In this document: positions 49,209 through 55,703 of the stretch, piece after piece
Position numbering within the stretch: the stretch's first letter is position 1
How the letters are laid out: every line of letters starts with the position of its first letter
From: Takakia lepidozioides
Taxonomy: Eukaryota; Plantae; Bryophyta
Length of the DNA: 64,000 bases
Assembly: GCA_030704615.1 (NCBI GenBank)
Contig: CM060734.1
Span: 53,630,001 to 53,694,000 of the forward strand
Direction: 5' to 3'
Translations under genes and position numbers: made by a program
Notes under the pieces: model-generated
What the model saw: the letters and a program-made list of their open reading frames with translations, nothing else
Database searches by the model: none
What the model was told of the DNA's origin: nothing

Positions 49209-52172
49209 TCATTGACATATTGTCAAGTCATGTGCAACAAGCCGAAAGCCAGCACCACCTTGGAAGTCGTAGACATCAAGTCCACATACCACATCTACCC
49301 TACACCCTGAAGGTACCTTGCTCCGGAATACCACTGGATCCACTGCATCCAGGCCCAGACTTCTTGTCCCTGCTGCATTTTTGTGAGAAAATCTGGTGGT
49401 GTAGCAAGCAGATTCTCCTGTGCCTGTGGTACCAATCCTGTAATCAGCCCCCATTCAAACCAATTGTATTTTAGATCCATCTTCGCCAAATTATGGAAAA
49501 TGATGGTTGATGCATATTAAGCCAGAAGGATTTATCCGCAACCTTATGCACAGTAAACAAGTGCTATACACAACCAGTCCCAGCAGATGTGAAACCAGCT
49601 GACACAATCTAGCATGAGGAGAGAAAAGTACCTGAGGCGAATTGCATGAACTCCACCCTCCCTCCAGATGGTTGTCGGCCTCCAGAGAGAGTGCCCACCC
49701 ATTGCTGCATACTTGCTGTGAACAAGAGTTTCCAATGTAAGAAGTAAGCTGCAAATTTCCTGAGATGGCTCGATGACAACGTTGAACGTTGGTTTGCCCA
49801 TCTTGTCAAAAGCATAGGTCTCACTGACACTGTATCTCATTGTGGCACTGGGCTCATACAATCGCAAAGGTAGCCCATCATACAACACTATTGGAATCTG
49901 CTGACCCCATGAGCTTGGTCCCTCTTCCACATTAAGTAAGCATGCACGGACCTCCTTTGGTGACAAGCATGCATGCCCCCTGTTTCTGTCTTCACTGGAT
50001 GACAGCAGAGTCCTCTCCAGCATTCTAGTCTCTGCTATTGTTGCACTCCAAGAGGACTTACAACCATGGAGGATACAGCTGCGTGCTGCTACCCACTCCT
50101 CCGATGTTGATGTGGTTGAAGAAGATACACTTTGAAATACTTGGCAGGGTGCATCTCCACCATCACTGCCTCTATCCAGGCTTTTCACAAAGCACGAGTC
50201 TTCTTGTTCGATTGGTCCACACCCATTTCCTTCCAAGTCCCACCCACACCCATTGATAGCGTCACCAAGCTCAGACCCCATCACCTTGACAACCTCTTCC
50301 AGTCTTTCAGATAATGCATGATGATCAAAGACATCCTTTGATTCAGAAAAATCAACAGGAATAGTGTCCTGATTACTGTTCATAAACTCATTGATGAGGG
50401 ACTGCATGGATGCCATATTTGTTACGGAGTCTTGAGCCATTACAGCAGAATGAATTGCATTATCAGATAAGCACAAATCAGAGAGAGAAACTGTTGTTTG
50501 AGGATCTTCCAGTAACACATGAGAGCTGCTTGCAGACCGGGGCTTTGAAAAAAGTTGGCCTGAAGAAGAAACACCGGGCATAGCCAGACTTGCACCAGTG
50601 AAGATAGCTGGAAACTTAGCCTCCTGCAGAGCAAGAGTCAATTTAGAAACTTGTACATAGGCACTCTCCCATCAAACCCCTGCAAGATTTATGACATATC
50701 TTGCTAGACATTGTGTGGGAACCTCAACAACCTCTACAGTCGCCATGCCCCTCCCACCCGTCACTTTAAGTGCAGAAAAGCTTCACTACGAATCGAAGTA
50801 GAGGTAGAAGAATAGACAAATGGAAACAAACAAGCACAAGGACAGGTAGAAGTTGCTTACAAGGAACAACAAGGTGGCACATGATCTCAAAATTTGAAAA
50901 TTCATCCGTGCGTCTCCTATGCTCCTGTTTCACATGGCGGTTAAGGCAATGTGGGCCAAGTTACTGGACAGATATTGGCGCTGGGTGGAAAATAATCTTT
51001 ATTACCACTGGCTGCAAGTTGAGAGTACTGATGCTGCTGCCAAACATTCCACCTTCCCGAAAACATCTTGCTTGTGCAGACAAAGCACACTTTCTAGATG
51101 GTGAGTTCGTCACAAACACGTGTTTGTTATTTGTGCATATCTGGCCACCAAAGTCCCTGTTGCTTCATTTTACTTTATGGATCTGAGTATCATTCTAAAA
51201 GTGAGTCAATGGAAGCCATATTTGTCATGTGTCACTGCAAGCACTATGACTTGTGTGAGAAGGAAAATTGGTTCATGACTTTGCCTCGAGAATCAAATAT
51301 AATATAAGTGGATCCACATCCAAGTGTCAGTATCATGAGTCCTTCCCAGCTTGTTATCTGGCACTGTGACCCTTCCCTGTGAGGCCTCTACTGTCTTGTC
51401 AGGTGCTATCTTGGTGACGACAAGCCAAATAGAAACGTAGAAATGAAGCTAGAAATCCCACCCATACCTGTGTACCTGCTCTCCAAGGCCGCAGTAGGAG
51501 GCCAGACTATCCATCTGCAAATTACAACTCACATATTCAGCACAAAGCCCCGTTGATGAGCTGATGGCTTACCCGATGGTTCACACTTGGCAAAGGCTTT
51601 ACCTTCATATTACCAGCTCGATTTCCAAAAGTGGATTTCAGTAGGGGCAATGTATCTATCACTTGCACAGGCTCCGGAGCTGATTGCCCAACTTCAGCAA
51701 ACGCTTCTCGGATCCTCGGAATGTCAAACCTTAAGATGTTGTGCCCTGCCCACACTTGACCTGCACAAATCACATACCAACCGCACAACGGAAAGTCACT
51801 AAAACATTTTTCATCTAGGAAATTTCTACTCGTTGCCTGATATCACTCACCATATCTCTTGCTGCAACGGGCGCTCTGTTAAAGCAAGAGATACTGACCA
51901 TCGAGCAACTCGTATATTTTCCCAGCGATCTCTGAGAAAAGCGGTGCGTCCGCCACATCCTTCTTGGTAATGCCATTGCAACCCACGCTTCGACTCGAGA
52001 TGGCAGAGAGGGATGATGGCTGCACGAATGTGGAGTACGAATCCAGCTCCACTAAACCTTTCACAGACACCACTACGGCTCCAAACTCCAGAAGCTCAAA
52101 TTTCTGGCCTTTCTTTGTGGGTATTGTCGTCTCTACATCCAGGAACACGATTGCAACGGGCCCCATTTGCAT
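49209..52172 (-). CDS. NEN-type (NAC45/86-dependent exonuclease-domain) DEDDh 3'-5' exonuclease; 6 exons
   Basis: IVFLDVETTIP...LLEFGAVVV...SYSTFVQP..SVGCNGIT | VWAGHNILRFDIPRIREAF...IDTLPLL...FGNRAGNMK | MDSLASYCGLGEQVHR | SIGDARMNFQILRSCATLLFL | long middle exon | ...LDVYDFQGGAGFRLVAH. This architecture is characteristic of plant NEN1-4. Confidence 0.9.
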
Positions 52173-52259
52173 AGAGCTCGGCAGCGTGCAGCATCAACCA
52201 GCTGAATTCGTGAGCCTTTCTAAAAGCCCACCTCCCCTTCCTCCCCAAGAGAAGAAGAA

Positions 52260-52410
52260 GGACCCAATCCCGCGTATGACCCATACCTGCGGTTCGGCCG
52301 ACATGGATCGGTTCCTCAACGTGAGTATAAAAACCCACCGTTGTGCATCAGCGCGGAGAGGGTTTGCACCCTCACCCGCTCAGCGCGGACTGCCTGTTAC
52401 TATGGCAGTC
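52260..52410 (-). ncRNA. Candidate Fanzor omegaRNA scaffold (structured tract after the Fanzor stop codon)
   Basis: Consecutive hairpins on the minus strand: GACTGCC-9nt-GGCAGTC (52388-52410); GCGG.GAGGGT-GCAA-ACCCTC.CCGC (52353-52379); CAAC.GTGGGT-TTTTAT-ACTCAC-GTTG (52317-52343); a multi-stem including CCGC.GTATG-GGT-CATAC-GCGG (52260-52315). Position matches known Fanzor/TnpB omegaRNAs. Confidence 0.55.
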
Positions 52411-55400
52411 TTAATGAGATGTGTGGCCGGGCACGTCCCTCTCCGGCCTCTTCGCCCTGCAGAATGCCGGGTGGCGAGGCCGGGAGTCCCGCATTTCCAA
52501 GAACCGGTGCATGATGTTGTCCCAACCCAGCCTGCTATCGGACTACATGGAACCGAGACGCCAACGCAGCCGCGTATGAACTGCGACGCCCAATCTTTCC
52601 CGGGAATCGGCACTGGGGCATGGTCGCCATCATTTCGCTGCAACCGCAACATAGTTGGCTAGTTCGAAACTCGTCCACCATCAACATCTCGCTTGTCTTC
52701 TCCCATATCTTCTTCTGCAACTTGGAGGTTGGTGTGCTCTCCGTCCCAGGGCTGTTGTGCGCGAAAGAGGCGTTCCCAAAGGCCACCACTGTCGTCGGGT
52801 CGTTTACCGTCCGACTCACCTCCCTCGCAAGCGTCGCGTAGGCCCGTTCCGTCTTTATCCATGTCGCCCACCTCAACTCTCATTTGTTCACCACGTAGAA
52901 CTCGTTCAGTGCCCGGAGATGTGTCAGCACCGACGCCGCGTATAGGCTATACCCCGCTACAGTCGCCACCTTAGCAGAGATGGTGTTGACCCTCGAATTG
53001 AACTGCGTCATGGCTTCGTTCCTGGCCATCCACCTCTTCGTCAGCTTGGCCTGCCGCCGGTATCCGCACATGGTGTAGAACCGCGCCTTGCTGCAACGGA
53101 TCACTTGGAACCGGTCCCCTTGGCCCACCCACGGCTCGTTCAGCGCGGCCTCTGCTTTGGGCGAGTACACCACTCCCGTGTAGAGGTATTTTCGGCCCGG
53201 GTCGATGGACACGACTCGTTTAGGCAATGGCACGTGGGTGTGCGGAGTCGGTTTGGGCATTTCCTTTTTCTTGCGTCCTTTCACCTGCGGAAAAACAAGA
53301 CCAACGTCCGTTTAAAAAAACGTCAGTCTACAAGATGGTTTCCCTCAACTAAAGAGACGACATGCATGTCCACTCCCAATCAAACTACCTCAGAAACAAT
53401 ATTAAGCTTTTACTCCAATACATTTCCCAAACCAAAAGAGAAGCTCTCGCGTATCCAACGCCTTAAATGGGGTCTTTCACTAAACAAGGTTGTGGCGCCT
53501 GGAGGCACTCGACCACACATGTTTGCAGGGGGTATATACGGTCATAAACCATTCTGTTGTAGACATCGACCCCAACAGATCATGTTGCCATGTTTCTAAC
53601 CTTCAGCTAAAACCGATTTCGATTCATAGAAACGTCAGATAAATAACTCATCTAAGGCGACGAGCCTCGCTTTCGGGTTCAAGGAGGGTGGGAATATCGC
53701 CTTCCCGCACATGGCCCTTGACATTGCACATAATAAGACGATGTTGGTCGTCCAACAAGTTCACCTGCATTTGCGTCACGAGCCGGTACGCCCGATCACT
53801 AAAGACAATAAAAAACAAACATGGCGAATGAAGCAGTTGTCTTACTCTGGCTGTGACTGCAGGTTGGCGTCGGGCGCGAGCCCGACAACACACTGACCGC
53901 AACCCCGTCAGTGGTTATAAAATTCTGAAACTTGAGTCCTCTTCCAGGTCGTTCAAACTTCCGGTCGATTTTGAAAAAGTTGTTCCATCCCAACAAAATC
54001 CATAATTGGTAAAACGAAATGAACACGAACTTGGGGCATATGTCATCAATGGACACGACGACGATGGGAGCACGAGTGACCTCCCGTCGTTCCGCACGTG
54101 CGGCATACACCTGATGACCGCTGGTCACTGATTCCTCCTCTAGTACCCCACTTGCTTCCCCCTCCCCGAAAAACACAAGCAGGATTCGGGGGCAGACTTA
54201 CAATCTCCACAGTTCGTCGTCGCTCATGCTTTCTAGACCAGGATGATTCTGCACTATCGGTGTTGCCTTTGTCGCAAACGACCGCAAGATGGTGTTGGTG
54301 ATGGCTAACTGGACTGGCCTGACGCGCTTTTGCGGTAGGAGTGAGAAGAGCCGGAGCCCTTTGAGCTTCCTCGAATATGTCGGGCGCCGTCTCGGATGCA
54401 GCCTGTTGGCGTTGGCCATATCCTCGTGGTATGCACTGAGGTCTTGCAGGATTTTCCATGTTGTTGTGAGGTAGTCCTGCTTCTTTAGGTCGAGCGGCAA
54501 CAGTTCTCCAGGAAGAAGGTTGGTTATGATGAGGTGGCATATGTGGACCAGACTCTCAATCTGTCCGACATCCATATCTCGGAGCGTGGTGTACCGCGCC
54601 TTGCACGAAAGAATCGACGCCTCCGCGGATCCGTGCTCGTGGGCAAGTGTGGCCTTAATCACCAAGGAGACGGCGGCGCGGATGCTTTTGGTGTGGAAGG
54701 AAACATTGGATTTTGACACCATCATTCTTGCCCATTTCCGGAGGCAGGGAACCAAATTGACGGCGAGGGAGGTCTTGAAGTTGTCATGCATCTCATCGGC
54801 TAGCATGTCGGTGAGGTGAGTCCAGTGAGGCTTGCGCATCAGTTTTGTGTATCCTACCGGCCGGAGCAACTTGAACCGAACGTATGATGTGATGATTTCG
54901 GGGTCCTTGTTTTGGAGGAGCCTCCCGTCGTTCAGGACGGCACACACTGCCCGGTTGAAAAACGCCGACTTGCGTTGTAAGCCGTCGGGGAGGGCCAATC
55001 CTTCTGCAAGACATTTGATGATATGGTGCGACGCGAACAGAGATGCTTCCACAGCCAGCGGCGTCAATTCCTTGACAGTTTCCTCCACAACTTTTCTCAT
55101 GGCGTCCCTCAGGCAGAAGCTTTTGCTGAAGCTGACCCCCTTTTGACGGCGCGCTGCTGTTTCCTCTGGCTCAAAGCCGTCGATGGCACGGCTGGCTGAG
55201 GACCTGCTAGGCCGTTGGATATCGTGTTGCGCTCGCCGGGTGGAAGAACTGCAATTCTGATGGCCTTTGGTGGCAGGGTGTCGTTGATGACCGGTTGACG
55301 AAACACCGTTTCTTAGAGGAATCGGTCTGTGTAGTCTTGGACGCGGCTGGACGTTTCCTCCCGGCCCGCGGAACACCGGCTTCTGTCGGACTGGACAGAT

Positions 55401-55480
55401 TGGGACTGTCTTCAATCTTTTGTTGTTTCTTTCCTAGTAACTTCCGTCTTGATAATTTGCTGCAATCCACTAACGTCAAT
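52411..55480 (-). pseudogene. Fanzor1 (eukaryotic TnpB-like RNA-guided RuvC nuclease), intron-containing, inactivated
   Basis: N-terminal helical region (SKSFCLRDAMRKVVEETVKELTPLAVEASLFASHHI), [20 protein letters not shown], RuvC-I RVVSIDPGRK, VVAFGNASF, RuvC-II+ZnF VDEFRTSQLCCGC, RuvC-III WNRDANAA (inverted, 52515-52571), and C-terminal NIMHRFLEMRDSRPRHPAFCR. Lesions include an in-frame TGA at 52880-52882 and a frameshift near 53885. The 5' boundary is approximate. Confidence 0.88.
53648..53799 (-). pseudogene. RPS28: Ribosomal protein eS28 (RPS28) gene fragment inside the Fanzor intron
   Basis: VIGRTGS, a small frameshifting deletion, then [43 protein letters not shown]. This matches the eS28 C-terminus (…[25 protein letters not shown]). 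Confidence 0.9.
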
Positions 55481-55481
55481 G

Positions 55482-55703
55482 AAGCATCGTGTGGCGGCAG
55501 ATTTGGAAATTGATCCGCATCGTCGGATTCGGTGGGACATCTCCGTGTACAATGCCGTTCTAGTGTCGTTGAATTCGGTGTTTCTGTCCGACGTAGGTGT
55601 GAATGCGTTGATCGTTGTTTGCGTGGCGATGTTGGAAAGCCAAGTACAAACGTCCACGGAGCATCGCGTGACGGCGGATTTTGAAATTGATCCGCGTCGT
55701 CGG
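55482..55703. repeat. ~44-bp imperfect direct repeat upstream of the Fanzor ORF
   Basis: AGCATCGTGTGGCGGCAGATTTGGAAATTGATCCGCATCGTCGG (~55482-55525) versus AGCATCGCGTGACGGCGGATTTTGAAATTGATCCGCGTCGTCGG (~55660-55703). Confidence 0.75.

Follow-up and report, generated by a model that had tools for sequence, protein, structure and literature searches.

A probable micro-inversion of about 55 nt places the RuvC-III motif of a Fanzor1-like gene copy on the opposite strand

How a complete catalytic motif comes to lie on the strand opposite to the rest of its gene is the question raised by a Fanzor1-like gene in the window, that is, the whole 64-kb stretch of DNA analysed here. The gene occupies positions ~55415-52411 of the minus strand and consists of three exons. 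Fanzor1 is a eukaryotic TnpB-like RNA-guided nuclease. A sequence-only reading of this DNA had noted that the minus-strand frame breaks after ...GKIGRRSSYA, turns into nonsense and then resumes, and had assigned plus-strand positions 52515-52571 to the missing half of the zinc finger together with the RuvC-III Asp motif. Both observations were confirmed, the first by the readings of frames 0 and 1, the second by the sequence pattern of homologues and by a profile match (E 5.9e-4). The gene is composed as follows.

54201-55415, minus strand: exon 1, an open frame of 405 codons with homology to the N-terminal half of Fanzor1-like proteins, which ends in ...ELWR and is followed by GTAAGT
53886-53987, minus strand: exon 2 (WNNFFKIDRKF...)
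52883-53287, minus strand: start of exon 3, after a CAG acceptor, with the RuvC-I Asp in VVSIDPGRK (Asp codon 53201-53203)
52880-52882, minus strand: in-frame TGA in exon 3, aligned with a conserved Arg/Lys of the homologue motif K-R-x-R-K-L-R-W
52573-52879, minus strand: part of exon 3 located 5′ of the inversion, ending in ...GKIGRRSSY
52518-52572, plus strand: inverted segment, C-P-N-P-A-C-Y-R-T-T-W-N-R-D-A-N-A-A, with the second zinc-finger Cys pair and the RuvC-III motif
52411-52517, minus strand: gene tail 3′ of the inversion in a changed frame, NIMHRFLEMRDSRPRHPAFCR and 15 further codons, with TAA at 52411-52413

After the TGA, exon 3 reads MVDEFRTSQLCCGC on the minus strand and includes the RuvC-II Glu within MVDEFRTS (Glu codon 52670-52672) as well as the first zinc-finger pair, C-C-G-C, at 52640-52651. 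Frame 0 of the minus strand continues as ...MVDEFRTSQLCCGCSEMMATMPQCRFPGKIGRRSSYA, passes into eleven unrelated codons (AALASRFHVVR) and ends at a stop; frame 1 then picks up again as (W)DNIMHRFLEMRDSRPRHPAFCR. On the plus strand, positions 52515-52571 read CCPNPACYRTTWNRDANAA. Within them, at 52518-52571, lie the RuvC-III motif and the missing zinc-finger half, CPNPACYRTTWNRDANAA, and the codon of the catalytic RuvC-III Asp, GAC, is found at 52557-52559. The Asp-Glu-Asp catalytic triad is thus not encoded in one frame, with the first Asp and the Glu on the minus strand and the third residue on the plus strand. The coding sequence is interrupted by the TGA at 52880-52882, by the stop past the inversion junction and by the change from frame 0 to frame 1. 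A stop had also been placed directly after FCR; the frame in fact runs on for 15 codons, AKRPERDVPGHTSH, to the TAA at 52411-52413.

When the 113-residue upstream ORF was used as query in an exhaustive HMMER search, 142 relatives were obtained. The full-length ones end in ...DEFRTSxLCCxC...(15-40 residues)...Y-x-V-R-x-C-x-N-x-x-C-x-R-x-x-W-N-R-D-V-N-A-A-x-N-I-x-x-x-F-L...F-C-R, and since the homologue C-termini run ...MVDEFRTSKLCCACHSEMKGMP...YGVRLCQNTACHRTKWNRDVNGALNIQGRFLE...FCR, the plus-strand peptide corresponds exactly to the part that is absent from the minus strand. The best relative, P0001, reads ...YGVRLCQNTACHRTKWNRDVNGALNIQGRFLERVRGLERASPFCR. In tblastn the window exons aligned with P0001, P0002, P0023 and others over both the N-terminal and the C-terminal halves (E down to 1e-38). 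A profile built from 16 full-length relatives matched the Fanzor1 of Spizellomyces punctatus (8GKH) over essentially its whole length (E 1.4e-53) and those of Guillardia theta and Parasitella parasitica (E ~1e-38 each), while its matches to bacterial TnpB and Cas12f were confined to the C-terminal zinc-finger region. As the homologue profile matches solved Fanzor1 structures, the Fanzor1-type label, which the gene receives through its homologues, is justified. Pfam PF07282 (zinc-finger / TNB) was matched by 14 of the 16 homologues. The 5′ piece of the window gene matched it weakly (E 0.002; 18.7 bits vs. a cut-off of 26.3 bits), because half of the domain is inverted. Compared with Fanzor1 (8GKH, 9CER, 9CF0), the window gene is homologous over its length to proteins that match it, and its DNA retains the codons of all three RuvC residues (RuvC-I Asp, RuvC-II Glu, RuvC-III Asp) as well as those of both zinc-finger pairs. 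Unlike Fanzor1, the window copy cannot make the protein: RuvC-III lies on the wrong strand, the frame shifts and there is a nonsense codon.

P0001, the closest full-length relative, is a protein of 561 aa, predicted as one uninterrupted ORF, on an ENA metagenome assembly contig (L001, 395 kb). It adjoins an ATG8-family gene on this long, eukaryote-like contig and may offer an intact relative for comparison.

A C-terminal profile of 29 homologues was compared with every stop-to-stop peptide in the six frames of the window. Exactly three matches had E<0.01 in the whole window, the next best having an E of 1.1:

52879-52538, minus strand: profile positions 2-23, E 1e-7
52518-52574, plus strand, the aligned part of an ORF at 52515-52838: profile positions 40-58, E 5.9e-4
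52542-52414, minus strand: profile positions 59-84, E 8.8e-3

The three are colinear in the profile and lie on the minus, plus and minus strands of the window in turn, which identifies the plus-strand peptide as the absent piece, correctly placed but on the wrong strand. The same pattern was obtained when eight relatives were compared singly with the window by tblastn, successive parts of the query falling on alternating strands. For P0001, residues 290-510 matched minus-strand positions 53305-52616, residues 518-539 matched plus-strand positions 52506-52571 (E 6.5e-4) and residues 541-561 matched minus-strand positions 52518-52456; for P0018, residues 329-351 fell on the plus strand at the inverted segment. 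The peptide is short (18-19 residues), as would suit a chance resemblance. Yet its profile match is significant over the whole window, falls in the one gap of ~55 nt that lacks this segment of the profile and is colinear with its neighbours. Such a peptide would also come to lie on the plus strand if part of another Fanzor copy, in opposite orientation, adjoined the first, but tblastn gave no further plus-strand homology on either side, and a self-comparison of the 64-kb window revealed no second Fanzor copy, and so no inverted donor there. We regard chance or a second copy as highly improbable.

The orientation of this segment in other copies of the gene could be seen in four DNA runs. All of our read evidence comes from these runs, which belong to one study and a single sample, probably the one used for the assembly. 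Run contigs were placed on window positions 52000-55500 at 80% likeness. Many of them lay on the gene at 80-99% identity, with up to 8-11 different contigs at single positions, so that the gene is one member of a multi-copy family. Contigs with joints between opposite strands were found at 52518->52600 in all four runs and at 52519->52567 in three of the four. These contigs represent other copies, in which the segment is oriented like its flanks, i.e., not inverted; they align to the window segment on the strand opposite to that of their flanks, the window segment being the reverse complement of the sequence expected at this place. The flanks of the non-inverted contigs differ from the window by point changes, which makes them paralogues and not an alternative form of the window locus.

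Upstream in the gene, before 52518, one copy reads ...GGC TCA TAC GCG GTC CGA CTG and then TGT CCC AAC... (S-Y-A-V-R-L-C-P-N), and a second copy has the identical upstream junction, seen from the opposite side at 52570. Past 52567, one copy goes on with ...GCG ACG GTC AAC ATC ATG CAC CGG (A-T-V-N-I-M-H-R) and a further one ...GAC GTC AAC GCG GCG GTC AAC ATC (D-V-N-A-A-V-N-I). When the paralogue flanks were joined to the window's own segment, a single open frame was obtained, GSYAVRLCPNPACYRTTWNRDANATVNIMHR, which fits the homologue pattern residue for residue. Alignment of the re-inverted segment with Fanzor1-family homologues and with other copies, as the earlier reading had proposed, therefore gave one open frame and a normal orientation in the other copies.

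Several further features of the family were observed in the same contigs. Differences among copies (52000-55500, every run) were mostly transitions, with C>T at 85-127 places and G>A at 70-102 places, a dominance consistent with deamination-driven decay of repeats that are probably methylated. At 52315-52316 several paralogue contigs diverge from the window and their loose ends agree poorly with each other (0.56-0.62); the mobile element probably has its 3′ boundary here, with each copy's own flank beyond. The summed depth of the contigs peaks just 3′ of the coding region, at 52351-52467, as does the count of different contigs (8-11 at 52351), and the 3′ end of the element may be present in more copies than the gene itself. 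In each run one paralogue contig lacks the 85 nt at 52368-52452 and has CTC there instead, so that the last 14-15 codons and the stop of the window copy are not common to all copies; P0001 ends right at FCR. Beyond the element, at 51537-52172 of the minus strand, we found a host gene, represented by two exons, whose product has an RNase_T / DEDDh exonuclease domain (Pfam PF00929, E 5e-13 and 2e-6); its first coding exon starts ~150 nt from where the Fanzor element probably ends.

The paralogues also allowed the breakpoints to be placed. The flipped piece is recognizable between 52518 and 52572, about 55 nt; the upstream flank matches the paralogue form down to 52570 (10 nt identical) and the downstream flank up to 52519. 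The two junctions are as follows.

52570-52572, upstream in the gene: CGG on the coding strand, 3 nt that match the upstream flank and equally the end of the inverted piece
52518-52519, downstream in the gene: CA on the coding strand, 2 nt common to the inverted piece and the downstream flank

Microhomology is thus present at both switch points if the paralogue junctions are taken as ancestral; as these bases come from paralogues and not from the copy's own ancestor, the lengths may be off by a base or two. At the upstream junction, 8 nt (TCCGACTG, part of Val-Arg-Leu) that continue the flank in non-inverted copies are missing from the window copy. At the downstream one, other copies have GTC AAC ATC (V N I) vs. 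GAC AAC ATC in the window copy. Counting shared bases never twice, the net loss is 14 nt, namely 10 nt upstream and 4 nt downstream. For the ancestor of the window copy we infer a coding order of the flank ...TCATACGC, 10 nt, a 54-nt segment, 4 nt and the flank ACATCATG..., which would have been translated as ...SSY-A-V-R-L-CPNPACYRTTWNRDANAA-V-N-I-MHRF.... At present the same two flanks directly abut the reverse complement of the 54 nt. As a result of the 14-nt loss the gene leaves the inversion in a shifted frame (0 to 1) and the Val-Arg-Leu codons ahead of the zinc-finger Cys are gone; with inversion and frame shift together, translation of the gene no longer includes the RuvC-III Asp or the second half of the zinc finger.

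Part of the earlier account of this event holds, in that the segment was inverted in place and bases were lost, though at both junctions rather than at one. The 9-bp inverted repeat that had been postulated for the ancestral gene finds no counterpart in the paralogues, which read ...TAC GCG GTC CGA CTG TGT CCC... (Y A V R L C P) on one side and ...GTC AAC ATC... (V N I) on the other, with just CA shared. The paralogue flanks (CGACTG... / ...GTCAACATC) are not complementary and contain no inverted repeats around the segment, and none flank it in the present sequence with seeds down to 5-6 nt. The hairpin potential of the present region is not above that of shuffled sequence (-32.4 vs. a shuffled mean of -35.9 kcal/mol, with RNA parameters as a proxy). 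Of the doublet 'CC' in the earlier reading, one Cys (52518-52520) is ancestral, while the TGT preceding it is the complement of ...ACA... in Asn-Ile and was made by the junction. In paralogues and homologues the position of the first Cys of 'CC' is occupied by Leu, Arg or Gln.

Taken together, we consider it very probable that a single mutational micro-inversion has become fixed at this locus, which is one copy of a Fanzor1-like transposon gene that contains introns and exists in multiple copies; a 55-nt piece (52518-52572) would have been replaced by its own reverse complement. Judged from the junction sequences, a short-range replication template switch is the most likely process, at somewhat better than even confidence. 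In the four-point model of such switching, the fragments L->1, 2->3 and 4->R are joined (Loytynoja and Goldman; Walker et al. 2021, PMC7954356; Loytynoja 2022, PMC9435742), and the point order here would be 1-3-2-4. The nascent strand would have left its template at ...CGG, re-annealed or re-primed on the complementary strand ~65 nt ahead, copied back ~55 nt and returned at CA. The event resembles published template-switch mutations in that a short stretch is replaced by a nearby reverse complement in one event (PMC7954356), here with the order 1-3-2-4 and microhomologies of 3 nt and 2 nt. In great apes, most of the events described follow the order 1-4-3-2 or 3-2-1-4, and an inverted repeat is created or perfected by them (PMC7954356); in contrast, the event in the window is an in-place inversion with loss on both sides, in the coding region of a plant transposon gene.

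Microhomologies of 2-3 nt are what a switch, as proposed by the earlier reading, would leave, but the sequence does not decide between a switch and end joining. The same arrangement would result if two double-strand breaks ~65 nt apart released the fragment and end joining sealed it back in reverse, or if break-induced replication took place inside the segment. The small deletions at both junctions and the 2-3 nt of microhomology fit end joining equally well, and microhomology-mediated break-induced replication has been argued to lie behind the microinversions that distinguish human and chimpanzee (Potapova, Kondrashov and Mirkin 2022, PMC8755829). The sequence offers no argument against these routes, which we consider less probable than a template switch; a single switch is the more economical, since it replaces two breaks and the capture of a 55-nt fragment. 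The human-chimpanzee microinversions are likewise small, in place, fixed in the genome and precisely copied. They measure 17-33 nt and all have perfect or near-perfect flanking inverted repeats (PMC8755829), whereas the window inversion is 55 nt long, lacks such repeats and has lost 14 nt.

The micro-inversion could be an artefact of assembly or polishing, with the true orientation at the window locus being the normal one. Among the contigs listed, none at least 99% identical bridged 52518-52572 at this locus, and look-ups of junction-spanning ORFs in public gene catalogues gave no matches, both as an artefact would predict. No contigs encoding either of the two junction-spanning ORFs were found, and with exon 1 or the 113-aa ORF as query no proteins of the same genome were found. 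On the other hand, the runs contain 63-71% of the sampled words of 52300-53300, with 50-67 contigs per run at least 99% alike. Point changes set the inverted piece apart from the paralogue versions, which means that it is no paralogue read inserted the wrong way round. Moreover, clean microhomology junctions with a 14-nt loss look like the product of biological repair, and we know of no assembler that creates in-place inversions of 55 nt with such junctions and such a loss. On this evidence an artefact is unlikely, and we retain a genuine micro-inversion as our explanation.

Invertible DNA switches are site-specific invertase systems known from bacteria, and the sequence-only reading had raised a reversible on/off switch as a more speculative possibility. 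The window resembles such systems in that a functional element, here the catalytic motif of the nuclease, is inverted relative to its gene; nothing more speaks for a programmed switch. It differs in its eukaryotic host, the loss at the junctions, the dead gene and the absence of inverted repeats or recombination sites around the segment, and it is not a member of this class. Flipping the segment back would restore neither the frame nor the Val-Arg-Leu codons, as 14 nt are gone, and the gene is interrupted further upstream by a separate in-frame TGA. Only paralogue contigs, whose flanks differ from those of this locus, had the other orientation. We therefore give the switch practically no credence.

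The inversion itself is without function, a one-off ordinary mutation in a decaying gene copy. The inversion does knock out the nuclease at its catalytic site, as had been proposed, but it is not the sole knock-out, since the TGA at 52880-52882 also replaces a conserved Arg/Lys. This TGA is a second lesion, independent of the inversion, and could have arisen by a CGA-to-TGA change at a CpG. Read from its sequence, the window copy is a pseudogene and cannot encode the nuclease, because the wrong strand carries the RuvC-III Asp and half of the zinc finger, the frame is shifted and an independent TGA is present. It is also very unlikely that the inversion is polymorphic or recurrent in the Fanzor family, for example by way of breaks made by the family's own nuclease in its copies; in that case one would expect independent flips of this stretch in several copies or individuals.

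In annotation, the window copy should be labelled a pseudogene, and its intact-looking RuvC-III motif should not be counted as an active nuclease. The inversion has no bearing on how Fanzor works. It is a new instance of an already known type of mutation, and a textbook case in that the whole micro-inversion, in a plant-like genome, is cleanly resolved down to the microhomologies at its junctions. Transposon families with many copies lend themselves to the study of events of this kind, since the paralogues supply the ancestral state.
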